Sequence record: NC_006883.2
Direction: 5' to 3' (one strand)
Length of the DNA stretch: 64,000 nt
A model generated the notes under the pieces. It had not been told where the DNA came from and did no database searches. It saw only the letters and a list, made by a program, of their open reading frames with translations. Position 1 is the first letter of the stretch. Each line of letters begins with the position of its first letter. Of the stretch, positions 17,994 to 21,764 are shown one piece after another. Made by a program: the position numbers and the translations under genes.

Positions 17994-18364
17994 AAGACTG
18001 GTTGAACTCAATCAACCTAACAAAAAAGAATTTGATTGATGAAGATCCATCCATAGAAAAGGAGTATGCTCCTTATATAATTAACCGCATTTATTCAGGT
18101 CATCTTGATTCTGTGATGTTTGCAAATGAAATGAATAAGTATTCCTTTCTATCAAAGAAGATTCAATATGATTTTTATCTAAATAGTTTACGATCTAAGA
18201 AGAGGTTCTCTCCTTGGCTCAGAAAAGATAAGATTAAAGATCTTGATTATGTAAAACGTTACTATGGTTATAGTAATGAAAAGGCACAACAAGCATTGAA
18301 AATCCTAACTAAAGAACAACTTAATTTTATAAGATTAAAATTTGAAACTGGAGGAAAGCAATGA
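17984..18364 (+). CDS. gp62: clamp loader small subunit gp62
   Basis: YAPYIINR, QYDFY, YYGYSNEKA; TTG start. Confidence 0.9.
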   Translation: MELKDWLNSINLTKKNLIDEDPSIEKEYAPYIINRIYSGHLDSVMFANEMNKYSFLSKKIQYDFYLNSLRSKKRFSPWLRKDKIKDLDYVKRYYGYSNEKAQQALKILTKEQLNFIRLKFETGGKQ

Positions 18365-18804
18365 GTGTGGTTAAAGAACCCGAAGTGAGTTGGTCGCAAG
18401 ATCAAATGGTAGAAGTGACTCTAAATGAGCCAGATGACTTCCTAAAGGTAAGAGAAACCCTTACAAGAATTGGTGTAGCATCAAGAAAAGAAAAGAAGAT
18501 ATATCAATCTTGTCATATACTTCATAAGCAAGGAAGATATTTTCTTGTCCACTTTAAAGAATTATTTGCCTTAGATGGGAAACACGCTAACCTTACTTCT
18601 AACGACGTTCAGCGTCGCAACCGTATTGCTCAGCTCCTTGCTGATTGGGGATTGGTTGGTATCGTAGATACTGATAGGATACAGGACATTGCTCCACTTA
18701 ATCAGATAAAGGTTTTATCTTATAAAGATAAAGGAGATTGGATTTTAGAAACTAAGTATAATATTGGTGCAAAGAAAAAGAAAGTAGAGGAAGGGGGGAC
18801 TTGA
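18361..18804 (+). CDS. regA: translational repressor RegA
   Basis: DDFLKVRETLTRIG, HILHKQGRY, VHFKELF. Confidence 0.95.
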   Translation: MSVVKEPEVSWSQDQMVEVTLNEPDDFLKVRETLTRIGVASRKEKKIYQSCHILHKQGRYFLVHFKELFALDGKHANLTSNDVQRRNRIAQLLADWGLVGIVDTDRIQDIAPLNQIKVLSYKDKGDWILETKYNIGAKKKKVEEGGT

Positions 18805-18854: not shown

Positions 18855-19030
18855 GGGGAGTGACTGAATAAACTTTCTGGCATATAGCTGGTTAAGGTGA
18901 CGAGACACAGGTGGTGCTGCTACTCGCAAGAGTAGAATCGACTTACCAGTCGGGTCTCAGGCAAGGACGTAAAATTTACTACTGTAGTAATGCCCGTTCT
19001 TTGTTGGTAATACAGAAACCCAACCTCCCA
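18855..19030 (+). ncRNA. structured ncRNA, probably the manA RNA motif of cyanophages
   Basis: GC-elevated intergenic region; terminal GGGAG/CTCCC pairing, GAGAC/GTCTC stem, CTACTC-gcaa-GAGTAG GNRA hairpin. Family name is from recall, not a search. Confidence 0.6.
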
Positions 19031-19049
19031 CCCCAATATTTTTTTGATT

Positions 19050-19373
19050 ATGAGATTCAAAGCATTAGTTTTTGTTAGGTTAAGAGGATCTGTATCTGAT
19101 GCTGCTGGTAACGCAGTGATGAATAATGTAAAAATGGTTGCCCCTAAACTTAAACCACATTTGTTGAGGATAGGTAAGGCAATTGATTTTTGGTTTGATG
19201 CTGAGACTGAAGAGATAGCAAGAGAACAAATGGATCTTCTTTCTGATAGAATGCTTTCCAATACTGTGATAGAAGATTGGGAATATGAATTAGAGGAAAC
19301 CGAAGAAACTGGTATAGGAAATATATCAAATGATAATGCTGGTACATCAAAGCATCATCTATTTGGAGAATAA
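19050..19373 (+). CDS. purS: FGAM synthase subunit PurS
   Basis: VRLRGSVSDAAG..V, RIGKAI, LSNTVIEDW match the PurS pattern DPQG/RVGK/LANPVIEDY. Confidence 0.85.
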   Translation: MRFKALVFVRLRGSVSDAAGNAVMNNVKMVAPKLKPHLLRIGKAIDFWFDAETEEIAREQMDLLSDRMLSNTVIEDWEYELEETEETGIGNISNDNAGTSKHHLFGE

Positions 19374-19388
19374 CCGAATAAATAGGTA

Positions 19389-19411
19389 GGGGATACAACA
19401 TCCCCTTTTTT
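19389..19411 (+). terminator. rho-independent terminator
   Basis: GGGGAT-acaac-ATCCCC followed by T6. Confidence 0.75.
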
Positions 19412-19424
19412 AATGCTTTATGGT

Positions 19425-19483
19425 TAAATAGTAATGTACGCCTTCGGGGTACAAATTACACACTCGCTTATTTAAGGAGAACC
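19425..19483 (+). promoter_or_regulatory. late-type promoter and two-hairpin hsp20 leader (ROSE-like thermometer candidate)
   Basis: TAAATA; UUCG hairpin; CUCGCUU/AAGGAG stem over the SD. Confidence 0.55.
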
Positions 19484-19942
19484 ATGAACGCATTACAACG
19501 CTACCACGCTGAAAATCTTCCAGAACTAATGGATAAGATTTCAAAGCATGGAATTGGGATGGATGACTATCTGGATCGTTTTTTTAATTCAGATTTCCCA
19601 CAATCAAATTATCCACCATATAATTTAATTCAATTGAATAATCATGAGTCAACACTGGAGATCGCACTTGCAGGGTTTAAGAAAGATCAGTTACAAGTCT
19701 TCACGGAGTTTGGAAAACTATTTGTTGAAGGCAGAAAAGAAGAATCGGAAGTTGATGGAACGTTTATCCACAAAGGATTGGCCCAACGTAGTTTTAAACG
19801 AGTCTGGACGGTCTCCGACGATACAAAGGTTGGATCCGTCAAGTTTGAAGATGGACTCCTCACAGTGGAACTAAAGAAGATTGTACCAGAGCATCACGCT
19901 CGTAAAACTTACTTGGGAGGTAATGATCATGAAACTAACTAG
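19484..19942 (+). CDS. hsp20: small heat shock protein Hsp20 (IbpA-like)
   Basis: YPPYNLI, EIALAGF, HKGLAQRSFKR, DGLLTV. Confidence 0.95.
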   Translation: MNALQRYHAENLPELMDKISKHGIGMDDYLDRFFNSDFPQSNYPPYNLIQLNNHESTLEIALAGFKKDQLQVFTEFGKLFVEGRKEESEVDGTFIHKGLAQRSFKRVWTVSDDTKVGSVKFEDGLLTVELKKIVPEHHARKTYLGGNDHETN

Positions 19943-20027
19943 TCCTTTCAGCATTATAAAGAATGCTATTAGTGATCTCAAACGAGTTCCTAAAGAGAAG
20001 AAGCAAAAAGAAAAATCTGTGGTATAA
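19929..20027 (+). CDS. small basic hypothetical peptide (32 aa)
   Basis: GGAGG SD, MKLTSPFSIIKNAISDLKR. Confidence 0.45.
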   Translation: MKLTSPFSIIKNAISDLKRVPKEKKQKEKSVV

Positions 20028-20047
20028 TAAAAGAGTCAGAGAAATAC

Positions 20048-20102
20048 TGGCTGCGGTTATCTCCTTTGGTAGGTTCAGGATAAGCGGCTATAGGAATCTA
20101 CC
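20048..20102 (+). ncRNA. putative H-type pseudoknot RNA element
   Basis: S1 TGGCTGC..TTATC/GATAAGCGGCTA; S2 GGTAGGTTC/GAATCTACC. Confidence 0.45.
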
Positions 20103-20116
20103 ACAATATTATTTCA

Positions 20117-20791
20117 TTGTATATGCCAGCATTGATTTGTAACTTACCTTCTTATGAGGTATGGGTTAGAAAAGAATATCTCACTGATCATCAAAGTGGT
20201 CATGGAGAATATGTAAAGGGCGTTTGGGTATCGGCAAAATCGATACCTGGACGTGCTTTTTATTTTGAAACTTATCTACCAGAATACGCAGCAGTTTACG
20301 ATAAACTACCTATCAGTGCTTTTCTCTCATCACCAGAGAAACCAGAACCAGATATGGAATTACATAATCTACAGTTTTGGAACTGTATGGATTATGGATT
20401 AGTTGTTGTTCAAAAGCAATTCATTGGTTCAATGCATTATGAAATAATGACTCGTGATTATGGTAAACAAACTGGCACATATATTTGTACGCTAGATAAT
20501 TATCATCAAGACCCTGATCTAATAGATTATTCTACGAGTGAGAATCCTGGTGAACATAAATCTCATAACTTAATTGAATTGGATAATGGGCAGTTTGCTT
20601 TGTATCCTAATAATAGAATGAGAATCTATGACAATAGTTTGACTCCTGAGACACCAAAAACTCCTGACTTTAAAGTATCAACAGTTTATTATCAAGTTGA
20701 GAATGGTCACGATAGAGATGGATTAGGATCAGAAGAAAATTATTTTTGGAAAACAGCAAAGGAGAGAGATGGCGAATCGGAATTGGGATGA
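20117..20791 (+). CDS. conserved cyanophage hypothetical protein
   Basis: 224 aa; CNLP, LQFWNC, EHKSHN, YPNNR motifs. Confidence 0.7.
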   Translation: MYMPALICNLPSYEVWVRKEYLTDHQSGHGEYVKGVWVSAKSIPGRAFYFETYLPEYAAVYDKLPISAFLSSPEKPEPDMELHNLQFWNCMDYGLVVVQKQFIGSMHYEIMTRDYGKQTGTYICTLDNYHQDPDLIDYSTSENPGEHKSHNLIELDNGQFALYPNNRMRIYDNSLTPETPKTPDFKVSTVYYQVENGHDRDGLGSEENYFWKTAKERDGESELG

Positions 20792-21764
20792 TCCCCTTGA
20801 TTTTAAAGAAGAGGGTATTGTATTAGATTATAAAACTGCTGGTGTTGATATAGATGCTGGTAATAAGTTTGTAGAAGATCTTAAAACTAAAGTTCCTAAT
20901 CTTGGTGGGTTTGGTGGAATGATAAAGGTTCCTTCGGGATATGAGGAACCTATTTTAGTATCTGGAACTGATGGTGTAGGAACTAAAATTGATATTGCAC
21001 AAGCCGCTAATGACTATACAACTATTGGTATAGATCTTGTTGCCATGTGTGTGAATGATATAATAACCTGTGGTGCGAAACCATTATACTTCTTAGATTA
21101 TATTTCTACTCAGAAGTTAGATGATAAGATACCTGATATTATGACAGGTATTATTAAGGGTTGTGAGATAGCAGGTATGGATCTCTTAGGTGGAGAAACT
21201 GCTGAACATCCTCAGTATCAGATGAAGATTGACCTTGCTGGTTTCTGTACGGGTATAGTAGAAAAGAAAAAGATTATTGATGGATCTGTTATTAAACCAA
21301 GTGATAGAATTATTGGATTAGCAAGTAGTGGTGTTCATAGTAATGGATACAGTATTATTAATTATTTGGCACGTAGACTTAAGTTAGGGTATTATAGTCA
21401 CCCTGAGTTACTTACACCAACAACCATCTATGCTCCTGTTGTAGAACGTCTCTTAAATGAGGTTGAAGAGGTTTATGGTATGTCACATATTACTGGAGGA
21501 GGAATCCCTGAGAACCTTCCTAGATGCCTTCCAAAGGGACTTAAAGCACACGTTGATTGGAATGCTTGGAGTGTCCCAGAGATCTTCTTAGAGATCCAAA
21601 GACAGGGTAATATGGATGAGTTGGAGATGAGAAGAGTATTTAATCTAGGTATCGGATATTGTGTAATTGTTCCTGCTAATCGTGCTGAGTTGACTATGGA
21701 TATTATTAGAGGTGAAGGTATAGAGTGTTGGGAGATTGGTGAAGTTTATGAGGATAAGTGTTGA
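20769..21764 (+). CDS. purM: phosphoribosylaminoimidazole synthetase
   Basis: YKTAGVDI, TDGVGTK, GGETAE, HSNGYS, HITGGG. Confidence 0.95.
   Translation: MANRNWDDPLDFKEEGIVLDYKTAGVDIDAGNKFVEDLKTKVPNLGGFGGMIKVPSGYEEPILVSGTDGVGTKIDIAQAANDYTTIGIDLVAMCVNDIITCGAKPLYFLDYISTQKLDDKIPDIMTGIIKGCEIAGMDLLGGETAEHPQYQMKIDLAGFCTGIVEKKKIIDGSVIKPSDRIIGLASSGVHSNGYSIINYLARRLKLGYYSHPELLTPTTIYAPVVERLLNEVEEVYGMSHITGGGIPENLPRCLPKGLKAHVDWNAWSVPEIFLEIQRQGNMDELEMRRVFNLGIGYCVIVPANRAELTMDIIRGEGIECWEIGEVYEDKC

Follow-up and report, generated by a model that had tools for sequence, protein, structure and literature searches.

The hsp20 locus and its leader

The window analysed here is a 64,000-nucleotide stretch of sequence record NC_006883.2, and all positions given below are those of the window. 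It carries an hsp20 gene, and the encoded protein matches Hsp20 of Prochlorococcus phage P-SSM5 (HQ632825.1) with 100% identity; this cyanomyovirus is T4-like, belongs to the Kyanoviridae and has NATL2A as its host. Marine cyanomyoviruses have 25 core genes, hsp20 among them (PMC3037559). The genes on the 5' side of hsp20 are those for a clamp-loader subunit, regA and purS, and a terminator scan found an intrinsic terminator after purS that is the 5' limit of the hsp20 transcription unit; most relatives have an equivalent GC hairpin with a T run behind it. Between purS and hsp20, the GenBank record of P-SSM5 has no regulatory feature annotated. The features of the locus are as follows:

18361-18804, regA, upstream of hsp20
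19044-19373, purS, upstream of hsp20
19388-19411, plus strand, purS intrinsic terminator, AGGGGAU..AUCCCCU followed by a T run
19424-19430, plus strand, TTAAATA box, a candidate promoter element similar to a T4 late promoter and also to a -10 box
19436-19452, plus strand, hairpin I, GUAC-G-CC(UUCG)GG-GUAC, 6 bp with bulged G19440 and a UUCG tetraloop (ΔG37 -5.8 kcal/mol)
19453-19462, plus strand, single-stranded A/C-rich stretch separating hairpins I and II, without pairs in the minimum-energy fold
19463-19479, plus strand, hairpin II, candidate thermosensor (ΔG37 -1.7 kcal/mol)
19484-19942, plus strand, hsp20 coding sequence, 152 aa, IbpA-like (class A) small heat-shock protein (PF00011)

Hairpin II is composed of an arm that mimics an anti-Shine-Dalgarno (anti-SD) sequence, CUC-G-CUU (19463-19469), an AUUU loop (19470-19473) and the SD sequence AAGGAG (19474-19479). 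The ROSE motif UCGCU occupies 19464-19468 and pairs with AGGA(G), leaving G19466 bulged, and the hsp20 AUG (19484-19486) is unpaired and lies 4 nt past the hairpin. When 19436-19486 was folded with ViennaRNA, the minimum-energy and the centroid folds both consisted of exactly hairpins I and II (-10.3 kcal/mol). The initial annotation of this DNA, made from the letters alone, had placed a TAAATA at 19425-19430 and the two hairpins correctly to the base, and the pairing that it described for the second stem, which sequesters the SD with a bulged G, was the one obtained in the minimum-energy and consensus folds. The single-sequence fold is weakly above chance (z -1.7 to -2.1; 9-12 of 200 dinucleotide shuffles fold as well), so the structure is not established by one sequence alone. 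When the P-SSM5 leader is folded together with coding sequence, a different structure is predicted at 35 °C or below, in which the SD is covered too.

Conservation and covariation of the leader among phages

We collected 335 phage loci in all: 80 IMG/VR loci found with the window protein as query (amino-acid identity 79-95%), 15 loci comprising named phages across the cyanomyovirus genera together with pelagiphage HTVC115P, and three further sets of 80 loci, for which the queries were Hsp20 of S-RIM2, of ACG-2014i and of the pelagiphage. Nearly everywhere, the region before hsp20 follows the same plan from 5' to 3', with the box, a GC-topped tetraloop hairpin, a variable spacer, hairpin II, a short spacer and the ATG. 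Hairpin II takes the general form (C/G)U(C/U)GCU(U/A), a loop of 3-6 nt, and AAGGAG or a close variant of it; its loop varies freely in sequence and length, and the spacer between the two hairpins varies in both as well. When 73 distinct leaders were aligned with MAFFT, no columns were invariant except the U-C-G-C-U of the anti-SD arm, which include the column of the bulged G (G19466), and one G of the SD, so that the ROSE signature is better conserved than the SD itself; purifying selection is strong on the anti-SD arm and the bulge. RNAalifold, run on this plain MAFFT alignment, recovered hairpin II independently, bulge included.

A loose regular expression, T[CT]GCT..AGGA, gave 18 matches on both strands of the window and was too unspecific; it was replaced by a covariance model, R1, built from the 73-leader alignment, whose single match in the window is the leader itself. 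R1 matched before hsp20 at 78 of the 80 S-RIM2-like loci, at 78 of the 80 ACG-2014i-like loci and at 72/80 pelagiphage-like and other loci, and the matched loci span all cyanomyovirus groups sampled, pelagiphages and unknown phages. Run on three whole genomes, R1 returned nothing at E <= 0.1 although the loci match locally, which marks a limit of sensitivity and not an absence of the element.

The named structure was paired in 91.2% of the cells of alignment A1, compared with 37-56% when the pairing partners were slid. The corresponding values for alignments A2, A6 and A7, which were fitted to R1 and are hence biased towards it, were 94.2% (slid, 51-61%), 92.1% (41-63%) and 91.5% (27-55%). The observed pairing and covariation scores were reached by none of the shuffles. 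Compensatory double changes were found at 7 of the 8 pairs of hairpin I, in A1 and again in A2, with stem swaps from GUAC/GUAC to GGAU/AUCC, GUAU/AUAC, GGUU/GACC and GAAU/GUUC, and the loops of hairpin I among the relatives include UUCG, GUAA and GAAA. Hairpin II was paired in 95.8-100% of cells across the four alignments and is nearly invariant, as is to be expected of a stem with the SD as one arm. Its changes are few: the basal C-G is a G-C in all 56 distinct ACG-2014i-like leaders, the top U-A is an A-U in S-CAM1, and C to U changes in some phages give U-G wobbles, that is, the UUGCU form of the motif. The support that these comparisons lend to the pairing of hairpin II is thus that of conservation and a few flips, not of rich covariation. 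For the S-RIM2-like leaders, a register-shifted alternative fold, which also covers the SD, is predicted.

The initial annotation had proposed covariation in hsp20 leaders as a check and had named a stem not conserved among homologs as evidence against its reading; the stem turned out to be kept in about 300 phage loci, with abundant compensatory changes in hairpin I and clade-level flips in hairpin II. Chance origin of the structure is ruled out by this conservation across phage loci, and the leader is very probably a real conserved element that occludes the SD. Such a conserved and recognisable cis-regulatory RNA offers a direct experimental handle on phage hsp20.

A candidate promoter box and the probable transcript start

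The columns of the TAAATA box are nearly invariant in the 73-leader alignment. TAAATA or TAATTA precedes hairpin I at a distance of exactly 5 nt in 60 of the 64 distinct leaders of A1, 37 of the 58 of A6 and 24 of the 46 of A7; the box is absent from a minority of lineages, and the pelagiphage leaders have a TTGACA-N17-TATAAT promoter instead. We take this spacing to be typical of a T4 late promoter, and equally of a -10 hexamer, with +1 at the first bases of hairpin I. With the candidate box upstream, transcription probably starts at or adjoining G19436, and a start at this point would make hairpin I a 5'-terminal stem-loop. The placement of TAAATA before the leader in the initial annotation therefore holds, and its status as a promoter box is that of a candidate and not of a mapped element. 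In public RNA libraries, hsp20-like sequence is present in marine metatranscriptome contigs, which do not give 5' ends. Two RNA-seq runs contain the full stretch as single contigs spanning the whole 1.2 kb, for which a DNA source is possible.

Rfam matches and features of the ROSE-like class

In a permissive Rfam scan of 19300-19600, ROSE_3 and ROSE_2 were the only thermoregulator families that matched, and ROSE (RF00435) gave no match in the window leader. ROSE_3 (RF02523) matched at full length over its 69-position model with 16.7 bits against a gathering score of 43, and ROSE_2 (RF01832) matched locally on hairpin II with 13.9 bits against a gathering score of 65, the consensus being nearly identical. 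ROSE_3 was also the top-scoring family for several phage relatives, the best of which reached 39.9 bits against the threshold of 43. By the Rfam gathering criterion, the leader is not a member of ROSE_3, ROSE_2 or ROSE. The Infernal search against the ROSE families that the initial annotation had suggested thus returned ROSE_3 and ROSE_2 as the only matching thermoregulator families, at scores that stay below the gathering thresholds. Since the scores lie below threshold, routine annotation overlooks the element, and current annotations do not display any of the phage leaders scanned here.

The ROSE-like class is defined by a position in the 5'UTR of a small heat-shock gene and by a U(U/C)GCU motif imperfectly paired with the SD in the 3'-proximal hairpin (PMC3669281), a conserved bulged G opposite the SD (PMC9016746), and two to four stem-loops (PMC4166951). 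All of these are present in the leader: 19436-19483 directly precedes an HSP20/IbpA-like coding sequence, the motif lies at 19464-19468 in hairpin II, G19466 is bulged, and there are two hairpins, of which the 5' one is stable (hairpin I, -5.8 kcal/mol). In contrast to a fourU thermometer, in which four U are paired with the SD, the anti-SD arm reads CUCGCUU and not UUUU. With every feature that can be looked for in a sequence in place, the ROSE-like reading is supported at this level. At the NMR level, ROSE elements have non-canonical, heat-labile pairs, including a syn G-G pair made by the 'bulged' G (PMC9016746). ROSE elements are thought to sense heat through their non-canonical pairs.

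Comparison with known thermometers

The SD hairpin of E. coli K-12 ibpA, CUCGCUGAUUUCAGGAG, is identical to hairpin II of the phage, CUCGCUUAUUUAAGGAG, at 15 of 17 positions. The two differences are compensatory, with the loop-closing G-C of E. coli replaced by a U-A in the phage, and the AUUU loop and the bulged G are common to both. The downstream proteins are homologous, and both have Arg93 and Tyr34 (E. coli IbpA numbering). The E. coli leader differs in being longer, with three hairpins to the phage's two, and its hairpin is more stable (-4.1 versus -1.7 kcal/mol at 37 °C). Taken together, the class features, the conserved motif and bulge, and the near-identity to the E. coli ibpA hairpin support the ROSE-like reading proposed in the initial annotation.

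The closest described architecture is the ROSE-like element of Pseudomonas ibpA (PMC3669281; Krajewski et al. 2013). The two leaders share a plan of only two hairpins, with a GC-rich 5' hairpin I, a hairpin II formed by U(U/C)GCU and the SD, and an unpaired AUG, and both are about 50-60 nt long and stand before an IbpA-type small heat-shock gene. In Pseudomonas, hairpin I is temperature-insensitive, hairpin II is sufficient on its own, and reporter expression rose 3.3- to 8.3-fold between 25 and 42 °C (PMC3669281). There, the SD/anti-SD core is held between G-C pairs at either end, of which the upper is required for repression (PMC3669281), whereas the phage hairpin II has a G-C only at its base and U-A pairs next to the loop, which makes it much weaker than the Pseudomonas hairpin. 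The elements differ as well in their promoters, the box of the phage being similar to a -10 box or to a T4 late promoter and not of the sigma-32 type, and in that the phage element is virus-borne and falls under the Rfam gathering threshold.

Classical ROSE (Bradyrhizobium hspA, RF00435) has the U(U/C)GCU anti-SD arm and the conserved bulged G opposite the SD in common with the phage leader. It is 70-120 nt long with three to four hairpins, compared with which the phage element is minimal, and its last hairpin, which includes a U-U pair as well as an internal loop, extends over the AUG too (PMC9016746). Among cyanobacteria, one leader of Anabaena variabilis has been described as using a ROSE-like sequence (PMC4166951). 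Synechocystis hsp17 resembles the phage gene in that translation of a small heat-shock protein is controlled by SD occlusion in cyanobacterial cells, and differs from it in having one hairpin without the ROSE motif.

In phage lambda cIII, whose mechanism is unrelated to that of the hsp20 leader, alternative structures favour translation at physiological temperature; no ROSE motif is involved and no heat-shock gene is controlled. A temperature-responsive mRNA structure in a phage gene, cIII appears as an RNA thermometer in the reference list of PMC4166951. The statement of the initial annotation that no description was known for a phage consequently needs to be narrowed: an element of the ROSE type in a phage is apparently undescribed, and phage thermometers as such are not new. 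Our literature searches, whose coverage leaves out most subscription journals, found neither a ROSE-like element nor any other thermometer for phage hsp20. The phage element is notable in being virus-borne, very widespread in marine phages, minimal and unusually weak.

Hairpin energetics and a possible thermometer

The nearest-neighbour energy of the phage hairpin II at 37 °C is -1.1 to -1.7 kcal/mol; for the hairpin in the window it falls from -1.7 kcal/mol with the bulge to -5.5 kcal/mol once the bulge is removed in silico. Cooling to 20 °C brings the phage hairpin to -3.1 to -3.8 kcal/mol, a stability close to that of the E. coli hairpin at 37-42 °C (-4.1 to -3.4 kcal/mol); this modelled correspondence fits tuning to sea temperatures and is not proof of it. 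In the nearest-neighbour ensemble, which leaves the non-canonical pairs of ROSE outside the model, the accessibility of the SD is almost flat at 0.2-0.3 from 5 to 50 °C with no sharp switch, and two-state melting, calculated with a model blind to the same pairs, lies above 50 °C. The almost flat accessibility speaks for an alternative in which the leader does no relevant sensing, hairpin I protecting the mRNA from 5'-end-dependent decay and hairpin II fixing translation at a low level, and so does the general ability of 5' stem-loops to stabilise mRNAs (discussed in PMC3669281). We consider such constitutive control improbable, given that a fixed attenuator would not need the exact ROSE signature, that the bulged G is retained in essentially every lineage at a cost of about 3.8 kcal/mol, and that all phage groups hold hairpin II in a narrow, weak band (group medians of ΔG37, -1.1 to -1.8 kcal/mol).

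We propose instead that the leader, of about 48 nt, acts as a short two-hairpin ROSE-like RNA thermometer. The transcript would begin at or adjoining G19436, downstream of TTAAATA, and hairpin I with its UUCG loop, being 5'-terminal, would form at any temperature; by analogy with Pseudomonas ibpA, it most likely shields the 5' end and aids the folding of the weak hairpin II. In hairpin II, the anti-SD mimic CUC-G-CUU would pair with the SD AAGGAG, and the conserved bulged G would keep the stem weak (about -1.7 kcal/mol at 37 °C and about -3.8 at 20 °C). So long as the temperature is low, the SD would be occluded and 30S binding poor; on warming, hairpin II would open, the 30S subunit would be admitted and Hsp20 would be translated, the AUG never being paired. 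In addition, Hsp20 may bind the leader and repress its own translation, as E. coli IbpA does. We infer the temperature response from the validated ibpA thermometers of E. coli and Pseudomonas, with the structure and its conservation coming from the present comparisons, and we put the probability that the leader gates hsp20 translation by temperature in vivo at roughly 55%. A consideration against temperature as the cue is that open-ocean changes are small and slow, so that such a cue may matter less than it does for soil or enteric bacteria.

Self-repression by Hsp20 as a possible second layer

The near-identity of hairpin II to the E. coli ibpA hairpin also bears on a different reading, in which the leader works chiefly as an operator, and as an aggregation sensor, through which Hsp20 represses its own synthesis, and temperature is secondary. 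Free Hsp20 oligomers would bind the leader and block translation, and their titration by unfolded or assembling proteins would restore it. IbpA of E. coli, Cedecea and Vibrio binds the ibpA 5'UTR and represses its own translation (PMC10474464). For this activity Arg93 is irreplaceable and Tyr34 and a basic residue at position 97 are needed, and IbpB is without these (PMC10474464). In 255 distinct phage Hsp20 sequences, Arg is found at the position of Arg93 in 255/255 and Tyr at that of Tyr34 in 255/255, and position 97 is Arg or Lys in 253; in the Hsp20 of the window, the counterparts are R102, Y43 and R106. Self-repression would account, moreover, for strict conservation in viruses from thermally stable water, where the load of unfolded or assembling protein could by this argument be a more important signal than temperature. 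Lys98, by contrast, is not conserved among the same 255 sequences, and Arg93 may persist for structural reasons; since the RNA features that IbpA recognises are undefined, the conserved residues are only suggestive. We regard self-repression as unlikely to be the main function, and it may coexist with a thermometer as it does in E. coli. There, both operate on one leader, which makes self-repression a rival for primacy and at the same time a likely complement of the thermometer.

The combination of the two may be entertained tentatively for the leaders of cyanomyoviruses, pelagiphages and many uncultured marine phages: a dual sensor made up of a ROSE-type thermometer, with an unusually weak SD hairpin tuned to sea-surface temperatures, and a self-repression operator, the whole being a cassette derived from proteobacterial ibpA and working in cyanobacterial hosts that are without it. 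If this were true, the ocean's most abundant viruses would read the temperature and the proteostasis of the infected cell directly. With this leader before hsp20 in hundreds of marine phages, such viruses probably couple chaperone synthesis to temperature or to protein stress, and the amount of viral chaperone made is predicted to vary with how warm the infected cell is or with its protein-folding stress. This is relevant to the response of Prochlorococcus, Synechococcus and SAR11 infections to warming, and the phage leaders provide minimal, low-temperature hairpins as a natural series in which the tuning of thermometers can be studied.

Origin of the gene and its leader

The best NCBIfam match of the phage Hsp20 proteins is IbpA, at 69-106 bits, below the equivalog cut-off. 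Their alignment with E. coli IbpA has the YPPYN and AxAGF blocks in common, and the literature groups phage small heat-shock proteins with bacterial class A. A genome scan with the pattern NYPPYN[LVI].., derived from a subset of seven proteins, gave 74 loci. The eight most similar ones probably belong to phage contigs that binning had placed in MAGs, and the remainder are mostly from Pelagibacterales, with Burkholderiaceae, Rhodobacteraceae and others. R1 matched upstream of the gene at 56 of the 74 loci at E <= 10, and 39 of these matches were at E <= 0.01. The bacterial IbpA-like genes, in SAR11, Burkholderiaceae and others, carry hairpin II as CU(U/C)GCUU..AAGGAG.

A search of 200 further genomes from the class of a Fischerella MAG (the class was inferred) turned up no close homolog of phage Hsp20. 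An IbpA-like protein, the same hairpin in bacteria and the lack of a close homolog in the genomes sampled from that class point to a proteobacterial-type cassette and not to a host-derived gene, and from these comparisons gene and leader look like a single ibpA-type cassette of the proteobacterial kind that has been kept together in phages. Host origin of the cassette is not supported, given the absence of a close homolog in those 200 genomes and the placement of phage small heat-shock proteins with bacterial class A. On this evidence, gene and RNA regulator have stayed together across very different phage lineages and hosts, and ROSE-like elements extend from alpha- and gamma-proteobacteria to viruses and SAR11.

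The distribution of hairpin II also decides on a further candidate, namely that the leader is bound by RegA, a translational repressor of the phage that is encoded directly upstream in most cyanomyoviruses. The proximity is real, in that regA adjoins hsp20 in many cyanomyoviruses and occupies 18361-18804 in the window, but in P-SSM5 purS and its terminator stand between the two genes. The same hairpin stands before hsp20 in pelagiphages (about 55 kb) and before the ibpA-like genes of SAR11, Burkholderiaceae and E. coli, and no regA adjoins hsp20 at the pelagiphage or the E. coli locus. With the motif present at loci that have no adjacent regA, we rejected a RegA operator as highly improbable. 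Among the bacterial leaders, the UUGCU variant of the motif occurs in SAR11 too, and one locus, from Pseudolabrys, passes the Rfam threshold for ROSE (RF00435).

Conserved and clade-specific features of the hsp20 leader

Hairpin I, the stable 5' stem-loop of the hsp20 leader (window 19436-19452), also carries a bulged G, and this second bulge is conserved in the relatives throughout the cyanomyovirus groups. It lies in the context Y-G-CC / GG-R, immediately beneath the stable tetraloop. The hairpin I of the pelagiphages, in contrast, is constructed differently. Hairpin II, which holds the SD, has its own form in the ACG-2014i-like loci (L176-L255), where the SD arm is AAGGAC and the basal pair is flipped to G-C across the whole clade. 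Only 0-1 nt separates the SD arm from the ATG in these loci, an unusually tight spacing for SD-led initiation.

Upstream of hairpin I, the candidate promoter element (the TAAATA/TATAAT box) is absent from 22 of the 46 distinct ACG-2014i-like leaders, from 7 of the 58 S-RIM2-like leaders and from S-CAM1 (box-less loci: L177, L178 and L181, ACG-2014i-like; L088, S-CAM1; L133, L142, L144, L145 and L152). Directly 5' of hairpin I, the box-less leaders inspected have a GC hairpin, after which come a short run of T and an ACGC motif. Transcripts with such leaders could arise by read-through from regA, by RNA processing or from another promoter.

The leader is also overlaid by annotated genes in two relatives. 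In P-HM1 (GU071101.1; L083:344-394), the GenBank hsp20 CDS begins at a GTG within the leader, 51 nt 5' of the ATG that is preceded by an SD. The annotated coding sequence therefore takes in both hairpins; its start was probably mis-called. In S-SM1 (L090:307-444), an antisense CDS named 'heat shock protein' overlies the leader and is probably spurious.

Genomic context of hsp20

The features around the P-SSM5 hsp20 gene are as follows.

19044-19373, purS (PF02700; GenBank name 'PurL'), with its own terminator
19915-19920, SD-like GGGAGG ahead of the small ORF
19923-20027, + strand, small basic ORF (MIMKLTSPF..., 32-34 aa)
20769-21764, purM, downstream of hsp20

Whereas regA is immediately upstream of hsp20 in many other cyanomyoviruses, purS with its terminator intervenes between the two genes in P-SSM5. 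With purS upstream and purM downstream, hsp20 of this phage is thus flanked by purine-synthesis genes. The 3' end of hsp20 and the small ORF overlap in different frames, and the overlap is covered by the C-terminal extension GGNDHETN of the P-SSM5 Hsp20; short ORFs are likewise annotated directly 3' of hsp20 in P-RSM6 and P-TIM68.

Related sequences in metagenomes and metatranscriptomes

The short contigs L336-L343 carry genes for Hsp20 with 43-65% identity to the phage protein; they are placed in MAGs of Psychromonas, Actinomycetota, Acidibacter, a Thermoplasmata archaeon, Paceibacterota and others. All except L341 match R1, the covariance model of the hsp20 leader, five of them at 55-62 bits. 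These look like cyanophage contigs mis-binned into MAGs.

Contigs from two public marine metatranscriptome runs (X6 and X7) span hsp20 and purS of P-SSM5-like phages with 88-100% identity (window 19000-20200), which shows that this sequence is present in RNA libraries, short of proof of transcription. One variant among these contigs has AAU as the loop of hairpin II.
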